IMG/VR virus record: IMGVR_UViG_3300037110_000087
Span: 186,001 to 250,000 of that record
DNA: 64,000 nucleotides
Strand: one strand, 5' to 3'
Shown piece by piece: positions 1 to 47,968 of the stretch. The translations under genes were made by a program, and so were the position numbers. The notes under the pieces are model-generated. The model was not told the origin of the DNA. It saw only the letters and a list, made by a program, of their open reading frames with translations, and made no database searches. The stretch's first letter is position 1, and each line of letters opens with the position of its first letter.

Positions 1-1228
1 CACAGCTCTTGCAGACTCCTCTGTCTCTCTTGTATACGGCCTTTCTGGCAAAACTGGGGAACATAGCAATCTTGTAGTCTGTCTCACATTCTTTGGAACA
101 ATAAACACTTCTGCGCTTCACTGTTATTGTCACTTTACATGCTTTGCAAATTTTGTTCTCGGATTTGGGTTCGCAAGCCTTGCAATACCATCTGCGATGA
201 TTCCATATGACCCTTCCTAACACAGTAAACTGGTGTCCATTTTTGCATTCGGTAAGAAACTCTGATTGGCCGTCTTTCCATGTTCCCGATATAAGCTTTC
301 CACCACAAGAGTTAATGTGCAATTCCAATTTGTCACGGTTGCTTGTAGTTCTGCTGGCTACCTGCATACCACAATCAAAACACCATCGGCCTTTCTTCAG
401 ATTGGCATAGGTACCGTTCCATTTATGGCCTTGGCCACACTGGAATGTGTATTTCCCATGATGTCCGAGATAAACACTGGATAGACATTCACCACCATAT
501 CGTCTTGCTAGTTCTTTGATCTCTATCATTTTGTCTTTGAATGTAGCACTAGCGAATTCTTCCACATTGTTGATCCTAAATGAGTCAGGGAGCAAGTTGT
601 TGATGAACTTTGGCAAATCGTTTATTTTGATGTTGTAAGGGATTACCAAGAGTTTCACATTATGATTGTCGCATTGTTTCTGTTTAAGTTCATCATAGTT
701 TGGATTCTCCCCCAGCCAAGTCGGTTTGTAATGTTGTTCTCCATTATGTTCGAAGGCTAATTTAAGTTCATCATTGAAACCATCAAGTTCTAATGAGTTG
801 CCCTTCGGAGAAACAAGCCAATCGGGTCTGATTTTCGAAAAAGACTTTCCGGTGATATGTTCCAACACTGACCTACAAAGTTCTTCTCGCACATAATACA
901 TCTTTGAGCATACAGTGCACCAACTATGGCCGGATACAACATTTGTATACGACGATTTCCATTGATGACCCAGATGACATTCCCAATCAAGAATGCTTTT
1001 TTCATTTTCGTAGTCTATGGATAAGCATTTGCCATTCTTTTGTTTCGCGAATGCTTGAGCGTTGGCCAAACTTTCTGTTTTTCGTATCCCCTTGCGCTCC
1101 TCTTTGCGCTTCGCAACAAGGTCCTGCCAATCCTTTTCTCTGAAATTCCTTCCGCAGTCCAAACATTTGAGTCTATGAACACCATTTCCAATTGCTCTCG
1201 TGCTCTTACAATCAGGACATTCTTCCAT
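1..1228 (-). CDS. Zn-ribbon-repeat nuclease with PD-(D/E)xK-type domain and start of an HNH-like domain; runs off window edge
   Basis: Not in ORF track (no stop inside window). Manual translation from ATG 1228: MEECPDCKS..., repeated C-xx-GH-x-W/F...W-C-xx-C units, RPDWLVSPKGNSLELDGFNDELKLAFEHNGEQHY, ends AVYKRDRGVCKSC. Confidence 0.75.
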   Translation of the reverse strand, partial: MEECPDCKSTRAIGNGVHRLKCLDCGRNFREKDWQDLVAKRKEERKGIRKTESLANAQAFAKQKNGKCLSIDYENEKSILDWECHLGHQWKSSYTNVVSGHSWCTVCSKMYYVREELCRSVLEHITGKSFSKIRPDWLVSPKGNSLELDGFNDELKLAFEHNGEQHYKPTWLGENPNYDELKQKQCDNHNVKLLVIPYNIKINDLPKFINNLLPDSFRINNVEEFASATFKDKMIEIKELARRYGGECLSSVYLGHHGKYTFQCGQGHKWNGTYANLKKGRWCFDCGMQVASRTTSNRDKLELHINSCGGKLISGTWKDGQSEFLTECKNGHQFTVLGRVIWNHRRWYCKACEPKSENKICKACKVTITVKRRSVYCSKECETDYKIAMFPSFARKAVYKRDRGVCKSC

Positions 1229-1313
1229 ATTTATACCTCTAGTTCATTTTATCATATTGACCATAATCCCTGTCGTGAGTGGTGGAGGGTTAAAGGATAT
1301 TTGGAGTAACCAA

Positions 1314-2054
1314 ATGTCGAAGAAGATCATGGTGGAAGTGTATAAAGACCACCCCGATGCGATCATGCCAAAGAAGGGTCGTACTGAAGGGATGTATGTG
1401 GATGCTTGCTATGATTTATTCACTCATGAGAACATCTGGATCCCGGCCCATTCTCAGGTGATGGTTGATACTGGCCTCAAGATACTGATCCCTACTGGCT
1501 ATTGGATCAAGTTCCATGAGCGCGGTGGTCTGGCTAGCAAGGCAATTAGTGTGGGTGCTGGGATCATTGATAACAATTATACTGGCAATTTCATAGTGAT
1601 TCTGCGCAACAACGATCCTGATGAAGATTTCAGTATCGCAGCGGGTAAGGCTATCGCCCAGTTTTCGCTAGAGAAGATCCGAGAAGTGAACTTTGTAGAA
1701 ATCAGCAAGGATATGCTTAACAGGATTAGTGAAGCTCGTAAGGAACGGGGTGAGAATGGATTTGGGTCATCTGACCGGATCGAATGCAAGGTTGTAGAAA
1801 AGCCTAGTGGGTACACGACTGATCACCATCCTGAGGAATGGGGTCCATCCAGTGATCGACATTTAACCTGTTCTTGTGGTGATACTGACCCAGATCACAT
1901 TCTACAAGTCCTGGGAGTACCAAAGGAACTCATTGAGGGTGGTAAACTATATGAACCAATCAATGGTGGACCACTTCCATTAGAAGCTCCGGAACAGATA
2001 AAAGAGATCTTCCATCATGGTAGTAGAATTGGTGGAACCCAGTACTACGCTTGA
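1314..2054 (+). CDS. dut: Trimeric dUTPase with C-terminal extension
   Basis: ACYDL, ERGGLA, GIIDNNYTG, AIAQ, RGENGFGSS motifs; ATG 1314 after GGAG. Confidence 0.9.
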   Translation: MSKKIMVEVYKDHPDAIMPKKGRTEGMYVDACYDLFTHENIWIPAHSQVMVDTGLKILIPTGYWIKFHERGGLASKAISVGAGIIDNNYTGNFIVILRNNDPDEDFSIAAGKAIAQFSLEKIREVNFVEISKDMLNRISEARKERGENGFGSSDRIECKVVEKPSGYTTDHHPEEWGPSSDRHLTCSCGDTDPDHILQVLGVPKELIEGGKLYEPINGGPLPLEAPEQIKEIFHHGSRIGGTQYYA

Positions 2055-2736
2055 TGATCGGAGTAGTCTATCACATTCCTCATAATTCCTCTATCATCCC
2101 ACCAGAGATAGAGGACTACTTCATTGCGAATATAAAAGAAGAAATAAACAAAGCTACGGATTTTTTCACCTTGGAACTCTTTATCAACAAGGTAACGAAT
2201 CTGGTTTTGGCTCCCTACAGTCTTGTGGTTGTGAACGTCCAAAGAAATATATATCAAGCGATTAGGGAAACTGCCCTCCGTAGGAAACTTTCTAGTGACG
2301 AGAGGGATCATTTGATCAAGGCTTATTACGAGCCACACCACAGATTGTTCAATGAGACAGTCAGCAAGGTTCTAGAAAAGAATGATCATTGTTTGATACT
2401 TGATTGTCACAGCTTTGAACCGAGAATCTCTGAAAGGATGGACATCTGTATTGGAACTAGCCGCTCTTATACCCCTAATAAGATCAGGGATGAGTTTGTT
2501 AGTTCTTTTCAGTCTATGGGTTTCAATGTTGAAATAAATAATCCTTATACCAGTCCCATAGTACCCAAGGAATATTTTGATAGCCCAAGAGTCTGGTCCA
2601 TCATGAAGTGAATCGCAAGATTTATCTTAGTAATGAGAAAGAGAAACTAGGTTCCTTCCAGAGCACTGCTGATAGAATTCAAAAGGCGATTGGATCTGCT
2701 CTGGTGGTTCTAGGAGCTAATGATAATCTTGTATAA
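2051..2736 (+). pseudogene. N-formylglutamate amidohydrolase-like, frameshifted near 2605 and apparently internally deleted
   Basis: HIPH, YYEPHH, LDCHSF, DICIGT, NNPY motifs; ORF stops at 2611 but EVNRKIYL continues in another frame to TAA 2736. Confidence 0.7.
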
Positions 2737-2738
2737 CA

Positions 2739-2754
2739 GGGGCCTTTCGGCCCC
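2739..2754. terminator. GC-rich hairpin
   Basis: GGGGCC-TTTC-GGCCCC. Confidence 0.55.
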
Positions 2755-2785
2755 CAAAAAGTATATAATGGAGAAAGGGAGGAAC

Positions 2786-3265
2786 ATGAAGCTCATTCTA
2801 ACAGCAAGAGTCAAAATGGCGACCTCTAAACTTTCTGATGAAGAGAGAAGAATAGCTTTGCAAAGACTCAGTGAATTATCTCCTCATAAAATCATTAACC
2901 GATATAATATGGATACATCTCCGCTCTATTCTGATAAAAGCGATATCGTCAACCCTGAAGACATATTTTCCAACAAGACAGTTTCAGCCTTCCCACGAAC
3001 TGATACCGAATTTTATTCCCATGCGACTGTTTCCGTGGTACATCTGATCTCACTTCAAGATTTTATTCCACGGAAAGGGATTGAGCATTATATTAATGAT
3101 CTCAGGACCGATGAACTTCCTTATGTAGTAGAACTTCCAGATGGACGACTTCTGATTGCTAGTGGGACCACACGATTGGCTGCACAAGTTTTAGCTGGTA
3201 GAAAATCAGTAGAGGTAATGTTGAGTGTTCTCGTCAATGGGAAACAGAAGAAGCCTAAGAGGTAA
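2786..3265 (+). CDS. ParB/Srx-like domain protein with Ala7 leader (MKLILTA)
   Basis: LPYVVELPDGRLLIASGTTRLAA resembles the ParB N-terminal G-x-x-R motif; SD GGAGG before ATG 2786. Confidence 0.55.
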   Translation: MKLILTARVKMATSKLSDEERRIALQRLSELSPHKIINRYNMDTSPLYSDKSDIVNPEDIFSNKTVSAFPRTDTEFYSHATVSVVHLISLQDFIPRKGIEHYINDLRTDELPYVVELPDGRLLIASGTTRLAAQVLAGRKSVEVMLSVLVNGKQKKPKR

Positions 3266-3269
3266 TAGC

Positions 3270-3578
3270 ATGTTGAAGTTCCGGGAGACAGCGTGGCTTC
3301 TGACTCTAAGAGAGTTCTTCAAGCATCTGTCCCCCGAAGATCAGCAGGATATTCTAAGAAAAGCTCCTGCCGATTGTGATGCCCTTGCTAACTTTGGCAT
3401 GGGGAAGATTGACACTGTGATCTTAAAATTGGTAGAGGTAAAAGCTTATGAATTGGAGGTAAAAGCTAAAGGGCAAGAATTGTCCTGCCAGGATAAAATA
3501 GATATATACGAGCAACCGATGATTTGGGGATCATTGGTCCAGGAACTGGCAGAGATAGAGAAGGAAGACACGAACTAG
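3270..3578 (+). CDS. hypothetical protein
   Basis: ORF with SD GAGG, directly after previous gene. Confidence 0.6.
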   Translation: MLKFRETAWLLTLREFFKHLSPEDQQDILRKAPADCDALANFGMGKIDTVILKLVEVKAYELEVKAKGQELSCQDKIDIYEQPMIWGSLVQELAEIEKEDTN

Positions 3579-3645
3579 ATAGTTGTGTCAAGTAGGATCG
3601 CGTTATTAATACAACAACACACATATCCTCGATGTAGGGAGTATA

Positions 3646-4812
3646 ATGTCTGAAAAGCGAAAGAGGGAGCAGAGTAGAGCTTCCAAAGAGTCAGAGACTA
3701 AAGAACCACAAATTTCTTTGTTGTCGGAACGAGCTAAAAAATATGATCCGGATGCAACCGTAGAGGATCTTATAGCGGATTTACGTAATGTACAGGAACG
3801 GTTCCCTGATATTTTCATCAGCAGGAACAAGTACCGCAAAGAGGGTGAGTATAGTGACTCTACCTGGGATTGCCGATTTGGTACCTTCAAAGAGTTCCGG
3901 AGACAGGCTGGCCTGGAGCTACATAGAGGTGCAACCAAGATCGAGATTGATACCGCTCTTCATGCTGCCAGGGATCGTTATCGTGGCTTTTTCGAAATTG
4001 AAGTAGCACCTTACGTAGGAAAATATGAGAAGACAGATAATTCAAAGGGCCTCAAGACAATTCTGATAGGATCAGACTTCCATGATAGAGAGTCTGATCC
4101 CTTCGTGTTATCGGTATTCATTGATACCGCACGTAGAGTTCAACCAGATGTGATCTGCCTTGCGGGTGACATCTTTGACCTCTACGAATTTTCCCGTTTT
4201 GACAAAGACCCAAGGCAAACTGACATTAGGGGCAGGTTTGACTTTGTAAGAGAAGAAATCTTTAGACCCCTCCGTGAAGCATGCCCAAGGGCACAGATTG
4301 ATTTTCTCATGGGCAACCATGATTATCGATTGATTAGACATATGGCGGATCGCACTCCTTACCTACGTTGCCTAATGGATCTGATGGGGATCTCCCTTTC
4401 CCAGGTGTTCGGTCTGGATAAGTTCCAGATCAATCTGGTCACCAGGGCAGATCTTTCTGCTCATACCCCTGCAGAATTCAAGGCAGAAATCAGAAAAAAC
4501 TATAAGGTCTATTATAAATGTTTTGTAGTAGACCACTATGGAGACAATGGATTCCAACTATGTGGGGCCAGTGGTCATACTCATAAACCAAGGCTGACTA
4601 CTAATGTCAATGAACTCATTGGCAATAGCTTCTGGATCACATTGGGTTGCATTTGCAATATCGATCTCGAGTATGTGGAAGGGTTGAACAAATATCAAAA
4701 CGGATTTGCAATGGTTCATATTGATCCGGAGACGAAAGAGTGTATTCCAGAGCCAATCATTTGCACAGCGAATCGTGCACTAGTTGGTGGCAAATTCTAT
4801 TCTAGATTATGA
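3646..4812 (+). CDS. Calcineurin-like metallophosphoesterase with N-terminal helical domain
   Basis: SDFH, AGDIFD, GNHD, GHTH motifs. Confidence 0.8.
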   Translation: MSEKRKREQSRASKESETKEPQISLLSERAKKYDPDATVEDLIADLRNVQERFPDIFISRNKYRKEGEYSDSTWDCRFGTFKEFRRQAGLELHRGATKIEIDTALHAARDRYRGFFEIEVAPYVGKYEKTDNSKGLKTILIGSDFHDRESDPFVLSVFIDTARRVQPDVICLAGDIFDLYEFSRFDKDPRQTDIRGRFDFVREEIFRPLREACPRAQIDFLMGNHDYRLIRHMADRTPYLRCLMDLMGISLSQVFGLDKFQINLVTRADLSAHTPAEFKAEIRKNYKVYYKCFVVDHYGDNGFQLCGASGHTHKPRLTTNVNELIGNSFWITLGCICNIDLEYVEGLNKYQNGFAMVHIDPETKECIPEPIICTANRALVGGKFYSRL

Positions 4813-4858
4813 TAATTGCGCCTCAGGCGATAAGCTGTTAAAATAATGAAGGTGCCCT

Positions 4859-5656
4859 ATGGATTTGATCTGCTCTGATCTCCACGCAAACATTCACGCT
4901 CTGAACCGGCTTAATCGCTATATCGGTGCGATAAAACCCTCGAAAATCGTCATCTTAGGCGATATTGTTGGCTATGGCGCATTCCCCAACGAAGCTTGTG
5001 ACTGGATTGGTGATCTTCAGTCCAGTTGCTATCTTACCTATGTTATCCATGGCAATCATGACTATGCGGTCAGAGATCTCGGTTATATACGCCATTTTAA
5101 TGATCGTGCAGCGCAAGCAGCACAATGGACAATCGATCAGCTGACTCCACGTAATAAGGAGTGGTTGGCTACTCTGCCACCACAGATAACCGATGAATCC
5201 GTTGAATATGTTCATGGTTCACCAACAGGTTTTGACGATTATATCCTTAATGGCTGGGATGTTCATAACGCCTTCGCGAAGATGACGGGAAAGATCTGTT
5301 TCTTCGGTCATACCCACCTTCCCATAATTATCTCTGCGCTTCCTGACGCTTCCGGTCGAGTGACTGATTTTGAAGTGGTGGAAACTGCTGCATCCAGTGG
5401 TGATATGTCAATGTATGGGCACATCAACAAGTGGTATCTGCTCGACTCTACCAAGAAATATCTGATTAACCCAGGATCTGTGGGCCAGCCACGAGATAGA
5501 AATTCTCGGTTGTCCTTCTGCCTGTTTGATCCGGATGCCTATGCAGTAAAATTTGTCAGACTGAATTATGATTGGGAAGCTGCAAAAGATGCCATCTACG
5601 CTACTGACGGTGGCCTACCCACCAGCTTAGGTGACCGGCTTCTAGAAGGCCGATAG
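4859..5656 (+). CDS. Metallophosphoesterase (YfcE/PPP-like)
   Basis: SDLHAN, GDIVGYG, GNHD, HGSP, GHTH, NPGSVGQPRD. Confidence 0.88.
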   Translation: MDLICSDLHANIHALNRLNRYIGAIKPSKIVILGDIVGYGAFPNEACDWIGDLQSSCYLTYVIHGNHDYAVRDLGYIRHFNDRAAQAAQWTIDQLTPRNKEWLATLPPQITDESVEYVHGSPTGFDDYILNGWDVHNAFAKMTGKICFFGHTHLPIIISALPDASGRVTDFEVVETAASSGDMSMYGHINKWYLLDSTKKYLINPGSVGQPRDRNSRLSFCLFDPDAYAVKFVRLNYDWEAAKDAIYATDGGLPTSLGDRLLEGR

Positions 5657-5712
5657 AACGCTCAGACCAGAAAATAGGTTAAAATAGAGGTAAGATCTCT
5701 ATGTGAGCCTAA

Positions 5713-8241
5713 ATGGAAATTGTAGCTGTCTCTGGAAAATTGGCAAGGAAGATTCTGCTAGATGTGAAGGGACTTCTATCTGAGGTCCCTTCACATGTGT
5801 CTATAGACACTCTCGATTATCAAACTCTCTCACATAAGATCAGAGCATTTATCATCTCAGACATCTATGAATATATGGGCACAGTAAAAATCTCCAAGTC
5901 CAGCAAATTTCATATTGGACCGGGTGGTGGCAAGGGTGAGAGCTGGTGTCATTACCAACCAAAATCGGATACCTTTGAATTCTTGACCGATCTCAATTCA
6001 CAAGCAACCAAAGAGGAATTTCTTTCTACATTGTTCCACGAGCTTGTCCATCTTGAGCAGTCTGCTAGGACCGTGAAGACCAATGAAGAGAAGTTCAAAA
6101 ATTTGAAACCGGCTGCAAAGTGGTTTGATGTGGGCGCTTGGCCCCTGGGTATCGGAGATTCTGTTCTGCACAAGACCAATGATCCCTATCTGGAAGATCC
6201 CCATGAGATCGAAGCCTATGCGGTGGAGCTGGCCGGTCTGATTGAAGATAGATACGATAGATCACAGATCAAAGAGCTAATCAACAAAATTTCCACTGAC
6301 CCAGAGAATCTCGATGAGCTGATCTATAGACATTTTGATGATGTAGTTATCAAGTATATCAGGAAAGTGACCGGAAAGTCGAAACAAAGATTTCTGAAGA
6401 TTTTATACCAGTGCTTATCCGAGTCGCTATTCGAGAAGACAGGATCTTCAGAAAATCTTATGAGTTGGTTTGGCGACAGTAAGATCGTGGATGGGGAAGG
6501 GAAACCTCTGAAGCTATATCATGGCAGTCGCTATACTTTTGATGGCAATTCGTTTAAGAAAGGTAAATATGGATATATTTACCTTACTCCAGAATCCTCA
6601 TATGCAGACTCTTATACTGATGATACGCCAGCATATCCACGAGGAGGGGTTTTCCCTCTCTATGTTAAGGCTATAAAGCCACTTGATCTCAGACCACTTT
6701 CTGATACTTATATTCCGTTGGAGAAATTCTTGGAGTTCGTAAACAGCAGGGGTGTTGATACAACACAAACCAACGAAAATGAGTATCAGGCCCTAGACTA
6801 CTTAACATGGAAATCAAAGGAATGTAGTCGTCTTCCAGCATGGTCATGGGTCAAGACGGAGGAGTTCAGGAAGCGGGTGATCGAAGCGGGTTATGATGCT
6901 ATCTGGCAGGTAGAAGGACTTAAGTATGATACACTAGCAGTATTTAGTCCAAAGCAATTGAAATCGGCTCTTGGGAATAATGGTGAATACGCGGAAGACG
7001 AGAACATCATAGCATCCACAAAGATAGCCACTGGGATTAAGCCACCAATCTGGATCAACGAACTTTGGGAATATGTTCGTAGATATACATTCAGACAGAT
7101 CACTGACATCTCACCTAATGTATGGAATGCCAAGGGTGGATATTTTTCGATTCCAGTCTCGAATTTTCTAACGGAGAAGGGTTTTAAGAACTCTGGCATC
7201 AACTTTAAATGGTTTTCGAAAGAGAGAAACCCAGAAGCCAAACAATGTAGCGGACATGCCTGTCGTTATTCTATAGATGGTGCTCCCTCAGGCTATTTCA
7301 TGGTAGTTATTCCTGATGCGGAGATGAACAATATTATAGCGGGTGAAAAAAAATTAGACCCCTATATATGGAACCGTGATGGTAAAGAAATAGTGACGGA
7401 GCGGAAAAGAGATCTTACCTATAGGGAACTGGATAAATATAAGACTGTCTTCGTTCATGAGTTTACGCATATGATGGACGAATCGGTTCATCACAAGAAC
7501 AAAAGATTACGATATCCCACTGATGCTGACTGGGAGAAGGACTGGGAGAAGTCTAATTTTCAACACAAGAAATTTCCCACAGAATGGAGAGCGCATCTCG
7601 GTGAGATCCGACAAGAACTAATTGATTCTAAAGCAGTAGAGGAATGGAATCAGGAATACTATTCTACAGTGATGGAGTTCCTGGACGAGCAATCCCCCAC
7701 TTGGAATAGAATCAAGAAATATCTACCTGCAAAAGGAAGACGTTACATCCTGCAAGCGATTGGTCATGATCTCATTGAAGCTCTTCCTGAAAAAGATAAA
7801 CCTTACAGGCGAAGAACTCTTGAAGAGAACCAACGTCAACGTGACGAATGGAAACGGAGAGAGGAAGCACCTTATCCACCTCGGTTTGAGAGTATCGAGA
7901 GAGTGAGAGCTTTATACGCGAAGGCTAAGCAGGATTTAGGGGAGCGCTCTCCAGAAGCCAAATTCCTTGAGGAGCGGCTTAAAACCTGGGATAAGGATCA
8001 GGAAGTTGAGAGTAGGGGTGAGTATGGCCCCATGCATATAGACAACTTCTCTGAATCCTACCTGGGGAATGAATGGAAGGATCTCGATCCAATGATTAAA
8101 GACTGGCTGAAGAAGGCTAACAAATCTCTCTTCCGAACACCCGCACCATCCGCGTATCCAGGGCATAAGTATGTTTGGAGAGATGAATCTCCTTGGATAC
8201 TTGGATTCGAAGATCCTATCGGAGAACCCTCTAAAGTTTAA
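5713..8241 (+). CDS. Polyvalent protein: zincin metallopeptidase - ADP-ribosyltransferase-like (ART-PolyVal type) - second zincin
   Basis: HELVH...DPHEIEA; WFGDSKIVDGEGKPLKLYHGS...YLT...GYDAI...AVFSPKQLKSA; HEFTH...PTEWRA. Confidence 0.75.
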   Translation: MEIVAVSGKLARKILLDVKGLLSEVPSHVSIDTLDYQTLSHKIRAFIISDIYEYMGTVKISKSSKFHIGPGGGKGESWCHYQPKSDTFEFLTDLNSQATKEEFLSTLFHELVHLEQSARTVKTNEEKFKNLKPAAKWFDVGAWPLGIGDSVLHKTNDPYLEDPHEIEAYAVELAGLIEDRYDRSQIKELINKISTDPENLDELIYRHFDDVVIKYIRKVTGKSKQRFLKILYQCLSESLFEKTGSSENLMSWFGDSKIVDGEGKPLKLYHGSRYTFDGNSFKKGKYGYIYLTPESSYADSYTDDTPAYPRGGVFPLYVKAIKPLDLRPLSDTYIPLEKFLEFVNSRGVDTTQTNENEYQALDYLTWKSKECSRLPAWSWVKTEEFRKRVIEAGYDAIWQVEGLKYDTLAVFSPKQLKSALGNNGEYAEDENIIASTKIATGIKPPIWINELWEYVRRYTFRQITDISPNVWNAKGGYFSIPVSNFLTEKGFKNSGINFKWFSKERNPEAKQCSGHACRYSIDGAPSGYFMVVIPDAEMNNIIAGEKKLDPYIWNRDGKEIVTERKRDLTYRELDKYKTVFVHEFTHMMDESVHHKNKRLRYPTDADWEKDWEKSNFQHKKFPTEWRAHLGEIRQELIDSKAVEEWNQEYYSTVMEFLDEQSPTWNRIKKYLPAKGRRYILQAIGHDLIEALPEKDKPYRRRTLEENQRQRDEWKRREEAPYPPRFESIERVRALYAKAKQDLGERSPEAKFLEERLKTWDKDQEVESRGEYGPMHIDNFSESYLGNEWKDLDPMIKDWLKKANKSLFRTPAPSAYPGHKYVWRDESPWILGFEDPIGEPSKV

Positions 8242-8692
8242 AGAAGGGATTGGCAGCAGCTTGATCAGCTAATTCATCAAGAGAGTAGACAATCTCAAGA
8301 TCTGGTTTAGCTAGAGACATTTGTATCTCAATATCTCGTTTACGCTGATACTCAGGCTCGATGCCAACCAGTAGAATTTTATCAGTGCTCCGATGCGCCC
8401 CTAATTCAAACAAGGTAATCGGGCAGAGAGTCTCCTTAGGGAACCAGAAGATGATTGCCTTAGCTTCCTGCATTGCCGCATATTCCCATTTGATTTGCTC
8501 TTCTGCTATCTTCCAGTCACCAATTCTAAAGGTAGGACGACGAGGATTAAGGAACTGCATGTCTTTAATTCCCTTAGCTCCTAGTAGTGTGATCAGTTGG
8601 CTTTGCCAATCAGGACAACCACTTATTCCTCCGGCTAAAAAACACGTAGTAGAGATTCCCTTGAAATAGGATCCTGGGGCCTTGATAATCAT
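8231..8692 (-). CDS. Nucleoside 2-deoxyribosyltransferase-like protein
   Basis: FLAGGISGCPDWQ, NPRR, QIKWE, PITLFELG. Confidence 0.8.
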   Translation of the reverse strand: MIIKAPGSYFKGISTTCFLAGGISGCPDWQSQLITLLGAKGIKDMQFLNPRRPTFRIGDWKIAEEQIKWEYAAMQEAKAIIFWFPKETLCPITLFELGAHRSTDKILLVGIEPEYQRKRDIEIQMSLAKPDLEIVYSLDELADQAAANPFFKL

Positions 8693-16968: not shown

Positions 16969-17985
16969 CTAATTAGCATGATTTTTGATAATCTCCTGGG
17001 CTTCTTTAACAGCCATTTCGATGATTTCTGGTTCAAGTTTATTACGTTCCAGTACAGTGTTTAGACCTGATAGTGGATCACCAAAGTCAATCTGATTGTC
17101 GACCACAATCTCTTCCGCTGTGGTATCCTGCTTCTCTTCAAGCAGCTGGATACTAATTACGTTCGTAGGATAAGCATAATCAAGGAACTTGCTAATGGTC
17201 TGGACCCGATAAAGGACCGCAGGGTTGAAGTCCGGGAGCTTGTCATAAATCTTCTCAGTCTTTAGTGGGATTGCGGAGATTAACGGAACTTGCTCTCTTT
17301 GTCTGGTGTCGGTGTCGTAGATCTCAAATCCCTTCTGTCCACCCTCACCAAAATTAAGTTGGCAAATGCTACCAGGATAGAAGGCATTACTACCAATAGC
17401 CTGTCTCAGATGAATATCACCTAAGAACCATTGTTTGATCCGATCGGCTCGATAATTGAACTCCCAGCCTTTCATGGCCTGAGAGTGATTATCATAAAAG
17501 CAACCCTTGGCTGCATAATGGGCTACTACGTGATCGATCTCAGGATCAGTATCTAGGGTTTCACTGATTCTCCCAGTGAACATATGAGATGCCCATAATA
17601 CTCTACCGAAACATTCATTGGTCGCTTCAAGATCTAAGTGCCATTTGATGTTGGAATGGGTGCAGAACGCTCTGGCTGGGTGAAGACAGGTAATATGAGC
17701 GTCAATATCTTCATGATTTCCACTAATAATATTGACCTGAGCCTGTTCTGCAAGTGTGAGCAAGAACCAAGCCAACAAATTGTATTCCTTACTGGTGGGC
17801 TTGTTTTTGTCCAGTAGATCACCACCAAGAATTACGTAAGTAATATTGCTGGTAATGATCTTATCAATAATTTCTTGGAGGACTTTTTTATGTCTCTGAA
17901 GGTAAAATGGACTCTCTGCTTCAAGATCACTATACCATTGACGACCACTTCCGATATGAATATCTGCGATGAAAGCTAATTTCAT
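16969..17985 (-). CDS. SbcD/Mre11 (T4 gp47-like) nuclease subunit
   Basis: ADIHIG, GGDLLD, SGNHE, VAH, LGDIH, YPGSICQLNFGE. Confidence 0.85.
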   Translation of the reverse strand: MKLAFIADIHIGSGRQWYSDLEAESPFYLQRHKKVLQEIIDKIITSNITYVILGGDLLDKNKPTSKEYNLLAWFLLTLAEQAQVNIISGNHEDIDAHITCLHPARAFCTHSNIKWHLDLEATNECFGRVLWASHMFTGRISETLDTDPEIDHVVAHYAAKGCFYDNHSQAMKGWEFNYRADRIKQWFLGDIHLRQAIGSNAFYPGSICQLNFGEGGQKGFEIYDTDTRQREQVPLISAIPLKTEKIYDKLPDFNPAVLYRVQTISKFLDYAYPTNVISIQLLEEKQDTTAEEIVVDNQIDFGDPLSGLNTVLERNKLEPEIIEMAVKEAQEIIKNHAN

Positions 17986-25051: not shown

Positions 25052-25510
25052 CTACTCCTCAGCCCATCCAGTGGACAGAGGTTCCCAATATTCCTGACCG
25101 AAGAATAGCTGGTGGCCAAGCAAATTGTCACGGAAATCTCTAACCCATTCCACACCCTTGTGCTTCTTCATCCCGGTAGCCAAGGTGACATGAGGTAAGT
25201 AGGAGGTAAAAGAATCAACTCCACCGCGATCAATCCAAGCGTTGTGTAATGCCTCGATTCCAGTGCTTTTAATCTTCGCAACTAAATAACCAAGCCGGTC
25301 ATGACCATCCCAGTATTGCAAACTGATGATTTGACCACGGTAGCACATGGCGGGACGAATATAGATAGAAGGATTCGGCACAGTCACTTTGCTGTAAAGA
25401 AGAGTAATATGGAGCGATTTGGGCAAGTGAATCGGTGTGCCCACTAGCTTCTGTCTGAGTAATTTCTCAGATTCCTGTCTCACCTTCAGTGCAACAAATG
25501 TCCCTGCCAT
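25052..25510 (-). CDS. 2H phosphoesterase (Acb1/T4 57B-like)
   Basis: two HxT motifs: LHITLLYSK and YLPHVTL. Confidence 0.75.
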   Translation of the reverse strand: MAGTFVALKVRQESEKLLRQKLVGTPIHLPKSLHITLLYSKVTVPNPSIYIRPAMCYRGQIISLQYWDGHDRLGYLVAKIKSTGIEALHNAWIDRGGVDSFTSYLPHVTLATGMKKHKGVEWVRDFRDNLLGHQLFFGQEYWEPLSTGWAEE

Positions 25511-25983
25511 TATGATTCCTTTTCTACTTTAGCCCTACCACCTGCGTCATACTTCTTAGTGATTTCTTCACCCTTTTTGATATCTTTGATGGTTTTGACT
25601 TCCACAAAGTCCTTGCCAATGACCTGCTTGGCATTTGGATGGTCGTCGTGGTTGAGCATTACAAAATAGCTAAGGCCGATTGGATTCTTGCCCTTAAACA
25701 GTTTAACTTGACTGAGCTTTTCCTTCTCACTCTTAGCGAACGGGTAATTGACTGGACCAAAAGGCATTGCATGGGTATCATACCATTTGAAACCATATAG
25801 ATCCACGAGCTTGGAATCCTTCATCAGCTTCCAGTCCTCGTCGGAGATCATGGACACCTTATCATGACAAATCACTGTACCCGAAGGGATGTCCTTGGCA
25901 GCAAATAAACCATTGCCCTTACCGGGAGAGACTTTCACACAGACTAGGCCCTTGTCTACTTCAGCGATCAAATGCAGTTTCAT
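25510..25983 (-). CDS. SET-domain lysine methyltransferase with Ala7 leader (MKLHLIA)
   Basis: KGNGLFAAKDIPSG, LNHDDHPNA, DIKKGEEITKKYD; ATGA overlap with holA-like stop. Confidence 0.85.
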   Translation of the reverse strand: MKLHLIAEVDKGLVCVKVSPGKGNGLFAAKDIPSGTVICHDKVSMISDEDWKLMKDSKLVDLYGFKWYDTHAMPFGPVNYPFAKSEKEKLSQVKLFKGKNPIGLSYFVMLNHDDHPNAKQVIGKDFVEVKTIKDIKKGEEITKKYDAGGRAKVEKES

Positions 25984-29996: not shown

Positions 29997-30019
29997 ATCC
30001 CACTCATTAAGGGACTAAA

Positions 30020-30050
30020 CAGATGCCGGGAGGTTTGCTCCCGGCATCTG
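30020..30050 (-). terminator. terminator after ligA
   Basis: CAGATGCCGGGAG / CTCCCGGCATCTG stem. Confidence 0.65.
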
Positions 30051-30057
30051 GTGTGGA

Positions 30058-32121
30058 CTACATCCCCAACATCTTGAAGAAGTCGGCTTCGGACACGATC
30101 TTGATCCCTGCGGCCTTGGCTTTCTTCATCTTGCCGCTGGTGGAGTCCATTTCGGCGGTGACCAGCATGGTGACGCTGGGCCGGAAGTCTTCTTCGATCC
30201 TGGCACCCTGCTTGGCCGCGAGATCCTGCATCCGCTTGCGGGTGAAACGCTCACCCTTGTCGTCGCAGCGTTCGATCTTGCCGGTGAACAGGAGGGTATC
30301 TCCCATCAGCACCATTTCGCCCTTGACCTGACTGCGTGGATCACCGTTACCGAAACCGGGCATGGGAGCCTCCTTGAGTTGGTTGAAGAGTGGATGGAAA
30401 TCGACGGTGGGAGGGAGTTCTTTTTCGTTGATCTTGATGGCTTCGAGCAGCGCTTCGATCATGGGCCGCGCCCTCTGGATGCCCTTCACGATAGTGTAGG
30501 CTTTCTTATCCTTGTAGCCGCCGACACTCAGCAGATAGGTAGCAGTCAGGCTGAACCAGCCATCGATGGTGTCGATGCCGGTCTTCTCCATGATGATCTC
30601 GCATTCCCTGCGGCCTAGAAACTTGATGCAGACCGAACCCATGAGATCGTTGAGATCGCAGTTCCTTGATTTGTTGATCTCACCGATGATACGATGAGCG
30701 TTCGCGGTTCCCAGCACCCCATTGCCCACCCTCACACGCTCCAGGGTGCTGTAGGTCAACTTGTAGAGATCCTGGGGCTGGGTCACAGTGCCGTTGTCGT
30801 AGAGAGCCTGGAGCAGGACGTCACCGATGAACAGGATGTTGCGCTTGGTGATCCACTGTTTGACCACCTGTATGCCCCGACCTTCGCAGGACTCGTTGAT
30901 GCATTTGGTCGAAGCACCATCCACGACCAGTGGTTCGTCACAGAAGGGACAGGTGCTGGGAGCCACGATCAGTTCACCGATGCGCTCTTTGGTCTGGTGG
31001 TCGTAGCGGGGGAAGACTTCCTTGATGTGGGGAATCACACCACCGGCCCGTTCGATGACCACCTTGTCACCGATACAGACACCACCCAGTTCCATGAGGT
31101 AGGGGAAGTTGTTGGCCAGGACGGACTTGCAGGTCACACCCTGGATGTCCACCGGATTGTATTTGAGGGTGGGGATGATGGCCCCAGTGCTGCCGATGGT
31201 GAGTTCCACACCAATGATGGTGGATTCGGCGGTGTCATTGGCGAACTTGATGGCCTTCTGCCCCTTCGGGCAGTTGTCGCTGCTCATGCCCAGGGTCTTC
31301 TGCGCTTGGACGCTGTTCATCTTGACCACGGTGCCATCGGCTTCGTAGTCGAACTCGTCCCGGTTGGTGACGAAGTAGGTCTTGAAGGCATTCTGGATGC
31401 CAACAGCGTCCTGGCAGAAGATGGACTCGACAGGCCGGAATCCCAGGTTCCGCATGAACTCGATGCGCATCTGCTCCGTGGGATAGACCCAGCGGCCATC
31501 CAGGGGGTCCAGCGGCTCATATTCGAAGACGATGAGATCCAGGTGACGGGCGAGGTTGGTTCCCTTCTGGTCGCGGACGACCGCCACCGAATTGCGGCAG
31601 GTCTTGTGACCCAGCGGCTGGAAGAACTCCGTATACTTGGTCTTGCTTAGCAGCAGTTCACCCCTCACATCGCCAGTGAAGGGAACTGGAAGCCGCTTAG
31701 GGATCGAGGGGATGTTCACGGCATTGAATAGCACGGACTCCCCGACCTCACCATCACCCCTGGTAGCCGCTTCGGTCAAGCAGCCATCGGTGTATTGGAG
31801 GACGAGGGTCATGCCATCGAGCTTCCATTCCTGGAGGTAGCCATCGGTGGGCCGGATGTTGTCCTTGACCCAGTTCTTGATCTCGTCAGGCGACTTGAGT
31901 TTGTCTTGGCTCCCGGCGACGATCCGGTGGGTGACCTTCCTGGCATCCACCGGGACCTTGGCCCCGACCTTCCTGGAATAGGGGTGATTGGGTTCCAGGG
32001 CGCAGAACCGCTCTGCCATCCGGTCATATTCGTTGTCGGACAGGATGGGCTTGACCCGCACATAGTAGTCGTGGTCTGCCTGGAGCAGCTTCGGGAGGAG
32101 GGCTTCGGCCTCTTTGTTCAT
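30058..32121 (-). CDS. ligA: NAD-dependent DNA ligase
   Basis: YY...SDNEYD, KLDG, TRGDG, VRGE, DGTVVK, RAGGVIP, CPFC Zn finger, HhH, C-terminal BRCT. Confidence 0.95.
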   Translation of the reverse strand: MNKEAEALLPKLLQADHDYYVRVKPILSDNEYDRMAERFCALEPNHPYSRKVGAKVPVDARKVTHRIVAGSQDKLKSPDEIKNWVKDNIRPTDGYLQEWKLDGMTLVLQYTDGCLTEAATRGDGEVGESVLFNAVNIPSIPKRLPVPFTGDVRGELLLSKTKYTEFFQPLGHKTCRNSVAVVRDQKGTNLARHLDLIVFEYEPLDPLDGRWVYPTEQMRIEFMRNLGFRPVESIFCQDAVGIQNAFKTYFVTNRDEFDYEADGTVVKMNSVQAQKTLGMSSDNCPKGQKAIKFANDTAESTIIGVELTIGSTGAIIPTLKYNPVDIQGVTCKSVLANNFPYLMELGGVCIGDKVVIERAGGVIPHIKEVFPRYDHQTKERIGELIVAPSTCPFCDEPLVVDGASTKCINESCEGRGIQVVKQWITKRNILFIGDVLLQALYDNGTVTQPQDLYKLTYSTLERVRVGNGVLGTANAHRIIGEINKSRNCDLNDLMGSVCIKFLGRRECEIIMEKTGIDTIDGWFSLTATYLLSVGGYKDKKAYTIVKGIQRARPMIEALLEAIKINEKELPPTVDFHPLFNQLKEAPMPGFGNGDPRSQVKGEMVLMGDTLLFTGKIERCDDKGERFTRKRMQDLAAKQGARIEEDFRPSVTMLVTAEMDSTSGKMKKAKAAGIKIVSEADFFKMLGM

Positions 32122-41531: not shown

Positions 41532-42116
41532 ATGAAACCAAGATTCGCGGTGATCTCTTACCTTCCCTTTTTTAGAGGAAAGACTCCAGAAGATGCTGCT
41601 GAATACATGAACGTTCTCCCTCACGAAATTGGCTCTGCCAGCGGTTGCATCTGGACAATGGAAGAAAAGACTGGTGAGATTACAGCCATTCTCATCCTGA
41701 ACCTCGCTGAAGGATTACATGAGCATCTGCTGGAATGGAGTGAAGGACACGTGGAGGCCCGGTGGAGATTCGGGACTCATGACTTCCCTGATGGTCGATA
41801 TGGATTTCTCCTGGCTCCAAACATCGAACAGTCCATTCTCAGAGCCAAGATCAACATTAGTCTGCAGACCGGTCAGGTGATTCCAGACGATCACACCAGC
41901 GAAGTAGTATTCCGTCCGTTCAGTTTCATCAGCCTCTCGACCTCTCCGGTCTACAATCAAATCAAGGACAAGATCGGCAACAACCTCAAGATCTACTTCC
42001 TGGATCAGGCTGATTTCGATGATCATGGGTTCAGGATTGAAGATCTGTTCCTGATCGGCATAATCGAACGAACGGACATGTTTACCGGCTATCTGGAAGG
42101 TCTGATCGAACCTTAG
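41532..42116 (+). CDS. hypothetical protein
   Basis: ORF with purine-rich SD. Confidence 0.65.
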   Translation: MKPRFAVISYLPFFRGKTPEDAAEYMNVLPHEIGSASGCIWTMEEKTGEITAILILNLAEGLHEHLLEWSEGHVEARWRFGTHDFPDGRYGFLLAPNIEQSILRAKINISLQTGQVIPDDHTSEVVFRPFSFISLSTSPVYNQIKDKIGNNLKIYFLDQADFDDHGFRIEDLFLIGIIERTDMFTGYLEGLIEP

Positions 42117-42700
42117 CGCTTCGACTTTCCCTTGATGCCCATGCCTTTTAAGAAATCGTCGTCGCTCTGAATCAACTTCTTGTGGACCAGGAAGAGATAG
42201 GTGTAAAGCTGGTATGCCTCCATTCCCTGCCACTCCTCTGGAAGCGCGTCAAAACTATTGTCTGGAAGGGTTTCACCATAGGCGTTGCATTCTTCCTGAG
42301 TGAATCCAGCCGCTTCTCTTTTCTTGTCCCATTCCTCAGCTAACTCATCCAGTCCATAAGGATCGGGATATTGTTCAAAATAGTCATATTCATTAAGGAT
42401 TTGAACCTTATAAACTTTTTCAAGTTTAGCTACAATAGATGCAACCCATTCAGGATGAGACATGTTCTGTCCCCAAGCAGAAAAACTACTGACAGTTCCA
42501 TCACTACTGGGATAAGCCCAAAGCCAGCCTTTTCCATTTGTAAGGCCCAAAGCCCCGTTTTCCTCTTTGCCCACCCAAATTCTATGTTTCTCTCTGGTTA
42601 ACTGTCGGAGACTATCGAAGGGGATTTTTCCCTCGTCATCAGGAATCAACATATAGGCAGTGTCTGCCGTTTTAACGAATGCTTTAAGATATAGTTTCAT
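42113..42700 (-). CDS. hypothetical protein with Ala7 leader (MKLYLKAFVKTA)
   Basis: ATG 42700 after GGAG; overlaps end of upstream gene. Confidence 0.65.
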   Translation of the reverse strand: MKLYLKAFVKTADTAYMLIPDDEGKIPFDSLRQLTREKHRIWVGKEENGALGLTNGKGWLWAYPSSDGTVSSFSAWGQNMSHPEWVASIVAKLEKVYKVQILNEYDYFEQYPDPYGLDELAEEWDKKREAAGFTQEECNAYGETLPDNSFDALPEEWQGMEAYQLYTYLFLVHKKLIQSDDDFLKGMGIKGKSKR

Positions 42701-43952
42701 TCTTCTCTCCGACACATTCAGGCCCAAACTTCTCAATGGCTTTTTTGAAATATTCCACCAGGGCCGGTGGGGTGGAGTCTTCTTGATATGATTTGCGTCC
42801 ATCGCTTATCACAGCATTACCAAGAACCAGCATCACACCATTTCGGAACTTCTTTTGATAATACTCACGTTCCATAAGCTGGTCGAACGCCTTGCCATAG
42901 ACTGGATCAATATCGGTCAGCATTGATGAACATCCTGGGTTCTCGCATCCAAACAAATCAGAGTAATCAGAATAGCCGTTCACTATGGGTCTATGATATT
43001 CATGACAGAAGCCACAATAAGCATCGTTGCAGAAACCACTGGTGTACCTGGGTTCGGTGCCATTCAACCACTTGACGAAATGCCAGGGTGCACGGAGACT
43101 ATTGCACCAGACTTGGCTCATACCACAACGACATACATACAAGATGCCATAAGGGTACTGATGGTTCGTATTGATTACTGGCTTCTCATCAGGAAGAAGA
43201 TAGCCATAGCAATGAGCACATCTCATCGAGTGTTCGTTTTTGAATTTGGCTGTCCTTAGAGAGGCATTCCTGGTTTGCAGTGGATGGATTTGCTCAGGGT
43301 AGAAAGCAATCCAGGCTTCTTCTCTATACTGTGCGCTATCATACCCTTCCGCTTTCAGCCCTGCCACTAAATTAATAAAGTTGGGATCACTCGGGCTGAT
43401 GTGAAGAGCACGAAGGTCTGCTGGATTTTCCACGGAAAGTCTTGCGGAGATAATCCTACCATTCGGTTGATCTTTAATTAGATCCCTACAGTAATTAATA
43501 TCTCGGTGGAACATTGCTGGGGTTCGGAAAGTCTCTAATTCTTTTGTAGTGCCATGGTAGACCACATCTGGGACTTTGAGACTTGCATTAATTCTAATCT
43601 GTAAGGGATGAATTTCAGTGACCATCGCTCTTACATTATCAACGTGATTTCTGACTAATGACTCAATCCGGTGTAACCCATCCCAGACATAATAATCATC
43701 TTTGTACTTGACAATCTCAGGCAAGTTGTGAAACTTCGTTACCTGTCTAAGTAATTCTACTTTCTTATCCTCTATCTTAGATTGGACGCTCTTTAACTCT
43801 TGGATGGGCAGGGTCTTCTTATAGGTAACTGAAGAATGATTCTTCAACGCCTTGGCAATTTCTTCCTCCAAACGACGCGAAGCTACCGGGAGAGTTGTTT
43901 CCGTATCCCAGTAAGCTTTTCTTTTTACCCTAGCAATTAAATATAATATCAT
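42684..43952 (-). CDS. Polyvalent protein: ParB-like - ART-like - Cys-rich domain; Ala7 leader (MILYLIA)
   Basis: VWDGLHRI; VVYHGT...LKAEGYDSAQY..EAWIAFYPEQI; multiple CxxC; repeated junction IHPLQxR(I)NASL. Confidence 0.7.
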   Translation of the reverse strand: MILYLIARVKRKAYWDTETTLPVASRRLEEEIAKALKNHSSVTYKKTLPIQELKSVQSKIEDKKVELLRQVTKFHNLPEIVKYKDDYYVWDGLHRIESLVRNHVDNVRAMVTEIHPLQIRINASLKVPDVVYHGTTKELETFRTPAMFHRDINYCRDLIKDQPNGRIISARLSVENPADLRALHISPSDPNFINLVAGLKAEGYDSAQYREEAWIAFYPEQIHPLQTRNASLRTAKFKNEHSMRCAHCYGYLLPDEKPVINTNHQYPYGILYVCRCGMSQVWCNSLRAPWHFVKWLNGTEPRYTSGFCNDAYCGFCHEYHRPIVNGYSDYSDLFGCENPGCSSMLTDIDPVYGKAFDQLMEREYYQKKFRNGVMLVLGNAVISDGRKSYQEDSTPPALVEYFKKAIEKFGPECVGEKNETIS

Positions 43953-43971: not shown

Positions 43972-44430
43972 TCATTTTCTTGTCACCAAATCCCAGACTC
44001 TGATTATCTTGTCGCCTCTCCGTATAGCTGCACAGACTCGATGGCAACCGAACCAGATTTCTCCATCTACCATAACACTTGGATTAGCTGTTGATCCTGG
44101 CAGACGAGAATAATCCTCAATCTTTTGAAAGTCCATTCCACAGAAAACATCAGGATTAGACTTGTTAAAATCCCATACATCAAGGAGGCTGTCGGGATCT
44201 TTAATAGCATCCCAATGAGGAAGATGCTGTTTGGCTAAGAATTCTGGTGTGAGTTCAACGGTTCGCGGAGTCCAATACCTCATGTGAATATTAGCGAATT
44301 CCCAACGATCGCTTAAAGAGCCATCAGGACGCTCCTCTTCGATTTCCCGCTGAAGCACTGGAGGGAATCTACGCATAATTTCCCTCCAGGTAGGAGGCTC
44401 TTCAATTGTGGCTTTCAGCATCAGTCTCAT
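43972..44430 (-). CDS. ParB/Srx-like protein with Ala7 leader (MRLMLKA)
   Basis: PSVMVDGEIWFGCHRVCAA; TG-C-TATAAT immediately upstream. Confidence 0.55.
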   Translation of the reverse strand: MRLMLKATIEEPPTWREIMRRFPPVLQREIEEERPDGSLSDRWEFANIHMRYWTPRTVELTPEFLAKQHLPHWDAIKDPDSLLDVWDFNKSNPDVFCGMDFQKIEDYSRLPGSTANPSVMVDGEIWFGCHRVCAAIRRGDKIIRVWDLVTRK

Positions 44431-47152: not shown

Positions 47153-47968
47153 CTATTTTTGCCTTCGTAGGTATTCTTCTTCTAAATCCCAACAGGGCAT
47201 ACTTCGGCGCGATCTTTCTATGCCCATGACTACCAAAGAGGATTTTTTTCTAATTCCCTCATTATCGGATAAATCTTGATATCTGGTTGTTATTCCTTTG
47301 ATCATTTTCTTTTGATTCGATTCATCCAAGCTGGCAAACAATAAAGAGTATTCTCTATCAACTAAAATGGACTCAATCACCTGTTTTACAGATCTAATTG
47401 GCTCGTTTGTTTCAACAAAAAGCGGATCTACCTTTTCAAAACAAATTTGACCTAAATGGCCTCTTACCTCAGAATCTTGATTAAAATAACTAATCATTTT
47501 ATCAGAGGTTTCTTTATTTTCCGCCTTTTCTTGCCTTTTTACATCCCTTTTACTTTTCGGAGAGTCCACCAGATGAGTCAGTTCGTGGACAATGACCGGC
47601 ATCAACCATTCTTTAATTAGCGAAGGTCTGCCCAAAGAAAAATAAAACATACCAATATGGTCAAGATTAAACCTGAAACTGATAGTTCCATCAGATTTGT
47701 TGGTCATCCCTTCAAAAGGCGAACCACCGGACGTATTTTTTCCCCCTACCAATTCACAGATCAAAGTTATTACTAAGTTCACTAGATCATGTTTGTAATC
47801 CATTAATTCAATTGATAGATCTAGGGTGTTTAACACTCCCGGTTTAGAAATCAAATTGATATTAGGAATACCAGAAACTAACTCTTTGAGAGCACTTAGA
47901 AGTCTGGCTTCCTTTTCGGCATCCAAACCCAAATCAATTGGACGAGTGGCTGTGATTCTTAGCTTCAT
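47153..47968 (-). CDS. Zincin metallopeptidase with Ala7 leader (MKLRITA)
   Basis: IVHELTH...YFNQDSEVRGHLGQI, similar to both zincin domains of 5713-8241. Confidence 0.7.
   Translation of the reverse strand: MKLRITATRPIDLGLDAEKEARLLSALKELVSGIPNINLISKPGVLNTLDLSIELMDYKHDLVNLVITLICELVGGKNTSGGSPFEGMTNKSDGTISFRFNLDHIGMFYFSLGRPSLIKEWLMPVIVHELTHLVDSPKSKRDVKRQEKAENKETSDKMISYFNQDSEVRGHLGQICFEKVDPLFVETNEPIRSVKQVIESILVDREYSLLFASLDESNQKKMIKGITTRYQDLSDNEGIRKKSSLVVMGIERSRRSMPCWDLEEEYLRRQK

Follow-up and report, generated by a model that had tools for sequence, protein, structure and literature searches.

A single gene of an uncultured huge phage from peat encodes P0001, an 842-residue protein that is probably a compact conflict effector of the polyvalent type, a fusion of three modules in which an apparently intact ADP-ribosyltransferase (ART) domain with a His-Tyr-Asp (H-Y-D) triad is flanked by two divergent modules resembling the gluzincin metallopeptidases. 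The gene lies in a 64,000-nucleotide stretch of DNA, hereafter the window, which comprises bases 186001-250000 of the IMG/VR virus record IMGVR_UViG_3300037110_000087 (307,124 bp, judged 98% complete); positions are those of the window unless another contig is named. The runs that hold the sequence are nearly all peat metagenomes, with one from freshwater in addition. In the mechanism that we infer, which covers the catalytic activity, targets, self-processing and timing of P0001, the H-Y-D ART would draw on nicotinamide adenine dinucleotide (NAD+) for attaching ADP-ribose to some macromolecule of the host, probably a protein, which would thereby be redirected or disabled during infection. The flanks, as divergent gluzincin-like metallopeptidases with an HExxH motif and a Glu on the next helix, would either cut the two short linkers, freeing the three parts, or cleave host proteins. 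Both self-processing and host-directed roles have been proposed for the metallopeptidase (MPTase) domains interspersed in polyvalent proteins (PMC5512222).

The central ADP-ribosyltransferase domain

The Pfam family ART-PolyVal (PF18760) matches residues 260-425 at 58.8 bits against a curated cut-off of 31.2, covering profile positions 1-139 of 140, and reaches 62.6 bits in a six-frame search. The domain extends from an N-terminal WFGDSK (252) to KSALGN (422), hence over about residues 247-432. It was aligned with ART-PolyVal repeats of three unrelated metagenomic proteins and one paralogue from the same genome. In the resulting alignments (A1 and A4) G393 is invariant alongside the His and Asp of the triad (Table 1), and the column of the triad Tyr, Y290, holds Tyr in most homologues and Phe in one. 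When the domain profile was compared with all PDB sequences, only ARTs stood at the top, the best being diphtheria toxin (E 0.0056, on the stretch SYHGT...GFYST...AAGY), followed by PARP12/15 and cholix toxin. The YHGS element containing H270 aligns with the SYHGT of diphtheria toxin, and Y301 (6613-6615) matches the second Tyr of this toxin. As described by Iyer et al. 2017 (PMC5512222), the ART-PolyVal active site has its His on strand 1, its Tyr on strand 2 and its Asp on strand 5, and the family is related to the PARPs and to the diphtheria and cholix toxins. Judged from these profile and residue matches, the central domain is a genuine member of ART-PolyVal with its H-Y-D triad intact. 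The original prediction, which a model had made from the letters of this DNA, called the middle domain ART-like; a PF18760 score well above threshold and the intact triad bear this out.

The H-Y-E ARTs, namely diphtheria toxin, cholix toxin and the PARPs, share with the domain of P0001 the YHG[ST] and Y...Y NAD-binding elements, the likeness to diphtheria toxin being marginal at the E-value given above and confined to the first half of the domain. In contrast, the third catalytic residue of P0001 is an Asp in a GxD motif whereas the toxins have Glu, and P0001 is a phage protein that lacks the translocation and receptor domains of the toxins.

The flanking zincin-like modules

The N-terminal module, with the putative zinc-binding motif HELVH, constitutes a whole protein elsewhere, as seen from P0007, a stand-alone protein of 224 residues recovered by a word search (45% identity, 89% coverage), which aligns to residues 18-236 of P0001. 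P0007 is encoded on a 327,801-bp contig (L008) within a cluster of 15 tRNA genes (L008 5867-10989); the 64-kb window holds no tRNA gene. In the candidate region for the third zinc ligand, E165 and E172 are kept in both P0001 and P0007, and the invariant columns of alignment A3 are E167 and E172. The sub-threshold Pfam matches of this module (MPTase-PolyVal, DUF6782, DUF7844 and SprT-like) are all to zincin families and all fall on residues 77-130; two PHROGs of unknown function also match it (phrog_10499 at E 4e-7 and another at E 3e-5).

The C-terminal module defines a rare family. The word and family searches gave no assignment for residues 441-842, and an exhaustive search with them returned only eight of 1.84 billion representatives at E<=1e-3, all of them stand-alone proteins of 156-348 residues. 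P0009 (348 residues, E 1.7e-23), P0010 and P0006 align from their own N-termini, where GIxLPEW corresponds to residue 441, into the tail of P0001. The family is characterized by the motifs HE[LF]TH, PTEWRAY and LPxEGRRYIL and by the invariant positions E624, R626, W664 and L671; HExxH, E624, R626 and W664 are kept in all eight members. E624, invariant in alignments A2 and A5, lies on a predicted helix spanning positions 182-198 of the model described below. One member of the family matches MPTase-PolyVal at E 0.007. P0007 and P0009 come from samples of one series but are encoded on different contigs; in the related phage a paralogue of P0009, P0012, lies 2.5 kb from it (L014 560-1606 and 4078-4866). 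A truncated member, P0014, starts with a C-terminal motif that belongs to another module before it; tandem duplications of the C-terminal module therefore exist. Neither P0009 nor P0010 has anything that corresponds to the last ~40 residues of the tail of P0001 (from about 804), and P0006 aligns with them only loosely; residues 804-842 have a predicted local distance difference test score (pLDDT) below 50 in the AlphaFold2 (AF2) model.

For the 260-residue C-terminal core, AF2 gave a pLDDT of 77.6 and a predicted template modelling score (pTM) of 0.66. The model predicts an N-terminal helix, a small sheet, the HEFTH helix and a subsequent helix with E624, in an order of secondary structure that fits the description of the zincin core in PMC5512222. 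In this respect it would resemble the small zincins, such as the MPTase-PolyVal/ArdC C-terminal metalloprotease (PF18818), SprT-like, DUF6782, M78 and M48, which likewise have an N-terminal helix and small sheet before the HExxH helix and the Glu on the next helix. It differs from them in its long family-specific C-terminal helices, with PTEWRAY and LPxEGRRYIL, and in its charged tail. Foldseek searches of the PDB with the core placed ZMPSTE24 and a putative Zn metallopeptidase at the top without significance (E ~0.2, template modelling score (TM) ~0.2), and a BFVD fold search returned uncharacterised phage proteins only (E 1e-3); the fold search with a 402-residue C-terminal model was dominated by the long tail helices. 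In the ESM-Atlas, both modules neighbour unnamed phage clusters, followed at low TM by M78, SprT-like and M48 (TM 0.33-0.38) and LPD23. PDB sequence-profile searches with the N- and C-terminal modules yielded chance-level rows only.

The two flanks also match each other in profile-profile comparisons. With hhalign, the N-terminal module aligned with the C-terminal one at a probability of 81.7% (E 1.1e-5, 116 columns), with the two HExxH motifs superposed and P-x-E-x-x-A-[YH]-x-x-E paired with its counterpart, E165 and E172 falling on E624 and E631. A profile of the C-terminal family (A2) further finds in the genome a stand-alone paralogue, P0002 (E 1.4e-8), which matches this family with an hhalign probability of 88.9% and the N-terminal module weakly (36%). 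The three modules are thus distant kin. The original prediction had pointed to a third, related zincin standing alone at 47153 with a leader peptide; P0002 is indeed there, is related to the C-terminal module and begins with MKLRITA. The conclusion drawn from it, that domains have been shuffled within this genome, was overstated: similarity that is detectable only at the profile level makes the three modules too distant for recent shuffling in this genome, and it is better supported that genes which relatives keep apart have been fused.

Both flanks are probably zincins, as indicated by their motifs, sub-threshold Pfam matches and profile-profile matches. The earlier description of two peptidases bracketing an ART therefore stands as to the order, zincin-like, ART, zincin-like; as to peptidase status it is a reading of motifs, which the fold searches did not confirm. 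We regard it as distinctly improbable that these modules are not peptidases at all and serve instead as regulatory or substrate-recognition scaffolds for the ART, or as another kind of metal-dependent enzyme such as an HExxH oxygenase or a hydrolase of the ADP-ribosyl product. Such roles would fit the lack of a significant structural or hidden Markov model match to any characterised peptidase, and anthrax lethal factor offers a case of zincin and ART-fold domains cooperating with one partner inactive (PMC3496994). However, the full HExxH...E is retained in both modules at what are the most conserved positions of their families, and the sub-threshold Pfam matches and Atlas neighbours are all metallopeptidases (MPTase-PolyVal, DUF6782, SprT-like, M78 and M48).

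The fusion, its gene context and comparison with known systems

HExxH is present in only seven open reading frames (ORFs) of >=100 residues in the 307-kb genome, and three of these motifs are the ones discussed here. Given this rarity, an ART match above the Pfam threshold and the conservation of HExxH and Glu across independent homologues, the pattern of motifs and domains in P0001 is, by these measures, more than chance. All the motifs quoted in the original prediction are present: HELVH at 109-113, YHGS at 269-272, GYDA at 393-396, AVFSPKQLKS at 409-418 and HEFTH at 582-586, together with the junction sequences FEKTGSS at 240-246 and IIASTKIATG at 432-441. The short junctions that it described are located exactly where P0007 ends (~236) and where P0009, P0010 and P0006 start (441). 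As both flanks are complete stand-alone proteins, from samples of one series, the gene is, on the evidence of these homologues, a three-part fusion of modules that are separate in relatives. The first junction has a parallel in P0008, on an 854-bp frameshifted contig, which is 65% identical to P0001 and continues in frame from the end of the N-terminal module through a slightly longer linker to the WFGDSK motif of the ART; the N-terminal module and the ART are thus joined in at least one relative.

P0001 is a singleton: no full-length relative with all three domains was found in 5.8 billion clusters, 1.84 billion representatives, IMG/VR or JGI metagenomes. The IMG/VR scans were run with the whole protein and with the alignment of the N-terminal module and gave no match, and the JGI metagenome scans gave no relative of the tri-domain protein. 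A word search with the whole protein matched only ART-containing proteins of different architecture. Among 50,697 GenBank phage records neither the gene nor its N- or C-terminal module had a blastn or tblastn match, and the protein had no match in NCBIfam or PADLOC. Its isolation would be expected if the fusion were an artefact in which the loss of a stop codon, a frameshift or a chimera made in assembly had joined three neighbouring genes, but this is scarcely credible. An independent assembly from the probable source sample, a 106,975-bp Logan contig of depth 17.6, is identical across window 5400-8600; unitigs of two further samples span the junction between the ART and the C-terminal module (nucleotides 7006-7033) with zero differences; and P0008 reads through the other junction. 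Moreover, the two zincin genes occur on separate contigs, with differing gene contexts, in related samples, so that the fusion did not arise by plain read-through from one neighbour into the next. An assembly or frameshift artefact was accordingly rejected.

The N-terminus of P0001 reads MEIVAVSGKL. An in-frame TAA at 5710-5712, immediately 5' of the ATG, makes an upstream extension impossible, and codon 18 is a GTG (5764), an alternative start that lies opposite Met1 of P0007. A 23-bp intergenic element, AAATAGGTTAAAATAGAGGTAAG, lies 5' of the gene (window 5672-5712) and recurs once, 22 kb away with one mismatch (G000:C1:169636-169658). The distance of its GAGG suits a mini-ORF of two codons, ATG-TGA (5701-5706), and not the ATG at 5713, which leaves the true start or mode of initiation uncertain. 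A scan for promoters and terminators gave counts not above those in shuffled sequence.

The gene stands at the end of a rightward block, after a dUTPase, an unknown gene, an HNH-repeat metallophosphoesterase and a second metallophosphoesterase, and it is convergent with a nucleoside-deoxyribosyltransferase-like gene and an RNA ligase. Beyond the RNA ligase there are further phosphoesterases and a dual-specificity phosphatase, as well as SbcD and a CCA-adding enzyme. Within ~15 kb of P0001, where the genes are those of the dUTPase, phosphoesterases, RNA ligase, SbcD, CCA-adding enzyme and an HNH endonuclease, there are no head, portal, MuF or tail genes. Because P0001 closes a rightward block of host-takeover and nucleotide-metabolism genes, we lean towards its being made inside the infected cell rather than packaged in the capsid. 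As a separate observation, window 1200-22756 is dense in genes of the phosphoesterase and RNA-repair types. They comprise four metallophosphoesterases and a dual-specificity phosphatase, together with an RNA ligase, a CCA-adding enzyme, SbcD and a nucleoside 2-deoxyribosyltransferase-like protein, and suggest a region of tRNA/RNA repair or counter-defence.

Delivery with the virion, as originally proposed, finds nothing in the sequence to support it. In this alternative P0001 would be packaged and injected with the DNA, the zincins cutting the junctions before packaging or after injection so as to free an active ART, which would modify host proteins from the outset of infection in the manner of T4 Alt. 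ART-PolyVal domains are indeed typical of proteins predicted to be packaged (PMC5512222; PMC9503650), interspersed MPTase domains have been proposed to autoprocess such proteins (PMC5512222), and the short linkers of P0001 sit exactly between complete modules. Furthermore, the GenBank protein that matches the ART domain with the best coverage, gp273 of the cultured jumbo phage Tunturi_5 (Tunturiibacter phage, 308.7 kb, Finnish soil), is a 1,489-residue protein with NUDIX, three ART-PolyVal and GNAT domains encoded directly after a 'minor head protein' gene. In contrast to gp273, P0001 does not adjoin head or MuF-type genes, its neighbours being enzymes of nucleotide and RNA metabolism. It also lacks the MKLxLxA leader (see below) carried by other ART paralogues and by P0002, which would be odd if that leader were a packaging tag. 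We therefore consider packaging unlikely. T4 Alt is the model of a packaged and proteolytically processed ART (PMC5512222). Along with ModA and ModB, it resembles the effector proposed here in that these phage ARTs reprogram host proteins with NAD+. However, the T4 enzymes belong to the R-S-E clade and have no zincin modules, whereas P0001 has the H-Y-D triad; Alt is a late product, encoded alongside baseplate genes, and P0001 has neither its R-S-E site nor, judging by an N-terminus unlike the shared MKLxLxA leader of this genome, an N-terminal capsid-targeting leader.

The closest comparison for P0001 is the polyvalent class (Iyer et al. 2017, PMC5512222), whose proteins, like P0001, unite unrelated enzymatic domains in one phage polypeptide. 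P0001 has the architecture of this class, with three modules and two chemistries in one polypeptide of a 307-kb virus record, and shares with it the PF18760 H-Y-D ART and the interspersed HExxH...E zincin-like modules, the example at hand also coming from a jumbo phage. Fusions of MPTase and ART domains, and MPTase domains placed between effector domains, have been described in polyvalent proteins (PMC5512222). P0001 departs from the class in having only 842 residues and three modules, in zincins that score below the MPTase-PolyVal threshold and in lying away from the head-morphogenesis, MuF or portal genes that form the polyvalent context. The families of its zincin modules are rare and have no entry in Pfam, NCBIfam or PADLOC.

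Several points weigh against an intracellular effector with two metallopeptidase flanks. Neither zincin-like module reaches a Pfam threshold: MPTase-PolyVal (PF18818) scores 18.3 bits on the N-terminal module (14.8 when this is scanned alone) against a cut-off of 27.5, and the C-terminal module has no match to it at all. Before the annotated ATG at 5713 there is no Shine-Dalgarno sequence at a suitable spacing, and the gene occurs in no RNA run. Finally, since both the name ART-PolyVal and its literature are tied to packaged proteins, synthesis inside the cell is argued from gene context.

Anthrax lethal factor shows the same order of folds, zincin-like, ART-like and zincin protease, as an analogy of layout only: there is no sequence or profile similarity, and it was absent from the PDB profile searches with the N- and C-terminal modules. 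Its inactive ART-like domain belongs to the R-S-E (VIP2) type, whereas that of P0001 is H-Y-D and apparently intact; its domain I has lost the motif, whereas both zincin modules of P0001 retain HExxH. Pannifer and colleagues reportedly noted in 2001 that domain I resembles domain IV. Domain II resembles VIP2 and became a substrate-binding module, and domain IV has HEFGH...E735 (PMC3496994). A more speculative proposal, which we hold to be improbable, is that the fusion reflects a functional partnership of the H-Y-D ART with two rare phage-specific zincins. Such a partnership might be a pro-effector that releases three products by self-processing, or a machine like lethal factor in which the ART and protease domains act on one common substrate. 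It might also belong to a wider system, in which domains typical of polyvalent proteins (ART, NUDIX, SET and zincin) are carried by this phage clade mostly as separate small proteins, each bearing the 12-residue tag MKLxLxA-x-[VI]-K-K; P0001 would then be the one physically fused, untagged exception, and the tag a common signal for sorting, packaging or turnover.

P0001 alone leaves current views unchanged, as its architecture is already within the diversity described in 2017 and its ART domain is already recognised by Pfam. If the prediction of a polyvalent-type effector is true, P0001 would be a compact and tractable example of an MPTase-ART combination, with 842 residues against the 1,000-5,000 typical of the class. 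It would suit the testing of two old predictions, namely self-processing by the zincins and the ADP-ribosylation of host targets by H-Y-D ART-PolyVal domains. The fusion also ties two unannotated huge-phage families, the P0007-like and the P0009-like, to conflict biology centred on NAD+ and ADP-ribose.

Leader-bearing genes and other features of the window

Table 1. Coordinates of P0001 and its parts, of the paralogue P0002 and of ORFs with the leader peptide (those outside the window are examples)
Feature	Position	Strand	Residues	Remarks
Whole ORF, P0001	5713..8241	+	842 plus stop	uninterrupted, open under table 11
N-terminal zincin-like module	5713..6420	+	1-236	equals the complete stand-alone protein P0007
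HELVH, putative zinc-binding/catalytic motif	6037..6051	+	109-113	
EIEAYAVE, candidate third zinc ligand region	6205..6228	+	165-172	
Linker 1, ESLFEKTGSS	6421..6450	+	237-246	length differs in the relative P0008
ART-PolyVal ADP-ribosyltransferase domain	6451..7008	+	247-432	Pfam PF18760
H270, His of the H-Y-D triad (YHGS)	6520..6522	+	270	invariant in alignments A1 and A4
Y290, Tyr of the H-Y-D triad (IYLT)	6580..6582	+	290	from alignment and profile comparison
D395, Asp of the H-Y-D triad (GYDA)	6895..6897	+	395	invariant in A1 and A4
Linker 2, IASTKIAT	7009..7032	+	433-440	like the short N-terminal extension of stand-alone C-module homologues
C-terminal zincin-like core	7033..7812	+	441-700	rare stand-alone family P0009, P0010, P0006, P0011-14
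HEFTH, putative zinc-binding/catalytic motif	7456..7470	+	582-586	on predicted helix 137-153 of the model
EWRAHLGE	7582..7605	+	624-631	E624 candidate third zinc ligand
Charged helical tail	7813..8238	+	701-842	partly common to P0009, P0010, P0006
P0002, stand-alone zincin-like paralogue	47153..47968	-	271	HELTH 128-132; DSEVRGH motif; MKLRITA leader
Leader ORF in window	2786-3265	+		
Leader ORF in window	25510-25983	-		
Leader ORF in window	42113-42700	-		
Leader ORF in window	43972-44430	-		
Leader ORF in window	47153-47968	-		P0002
Leader ORF elsewhere	G000:C1:28377-29729	+		
Leader ORFs elsewhere	G000:C1:98515-100400	-		four in tandem
Leader ORFs elsewhere	G000:C1:118035-119243	+		
Leader ORFs elsewhere	G000:C1:143663-144415	+		three in tandem

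About 25 ORFs of the genome start with a 12-residue leader of the form M-K-L-x-L-x-A-x-[VI]-K-K-[AS] (Table 1). The ORFs that bear it encode, among others, several ART-PolyVal paralogues, the zincin P0002 and proteins with a NUDIX or a SET domain. Their leader codons differ synonymously and the DNA upstream is unrelated among them, indicating that selection acts on the leader peptide, which may be a tag for sorting, packaging or turnover. Related phage contigs (L008 and L009) also carry it, among others on a 74-residue helix-turn-helix protein, and in the related phage it is likewise found on an HNH-repeat protein. A match to the leader in the SbcD gene (window 16969-17985) was discarded as a false positive. 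A variant, MILYLIA, begins a 422-residue protein (window 42684-43952, minus strand) with a ParB-like DGxHR motif, a Cys-rich C-terminal half and a weak ART-PolyVal match (21.6 bits, YHGT...GYD). At G000:C1:98403-98811 (minus strand) an ART-PolyVal gene is seemingly split over two frames, the first half of the domain lying in a leader-tagged 98-residue ORF and its last part in a 44-residue frame; a frameshift or a sequencing error could account for this, or the gene could be a pseudogene.

Two further observations concern other genes of the window. A terminase-like ORF of 681 residues (59973-62018, minus strand) has tblastn matches in the terminase, portal, DNA polymerase III alpha and anaerobic ribonucleotide reductase genes of unrelated phages, a pattern that suggests an intein or Hint insertion; its best matches are in the uncultured huge phages LR756511 (595 kb) and LR745208 (485 kb). 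The G+C content of window 30001-32000 is 0.577, against ~0.45 elsewhere, and this island coincides with an NAD-dependent DNA ligase gene (30058-32121, minus strand), consistent with a separate origin of that gene.

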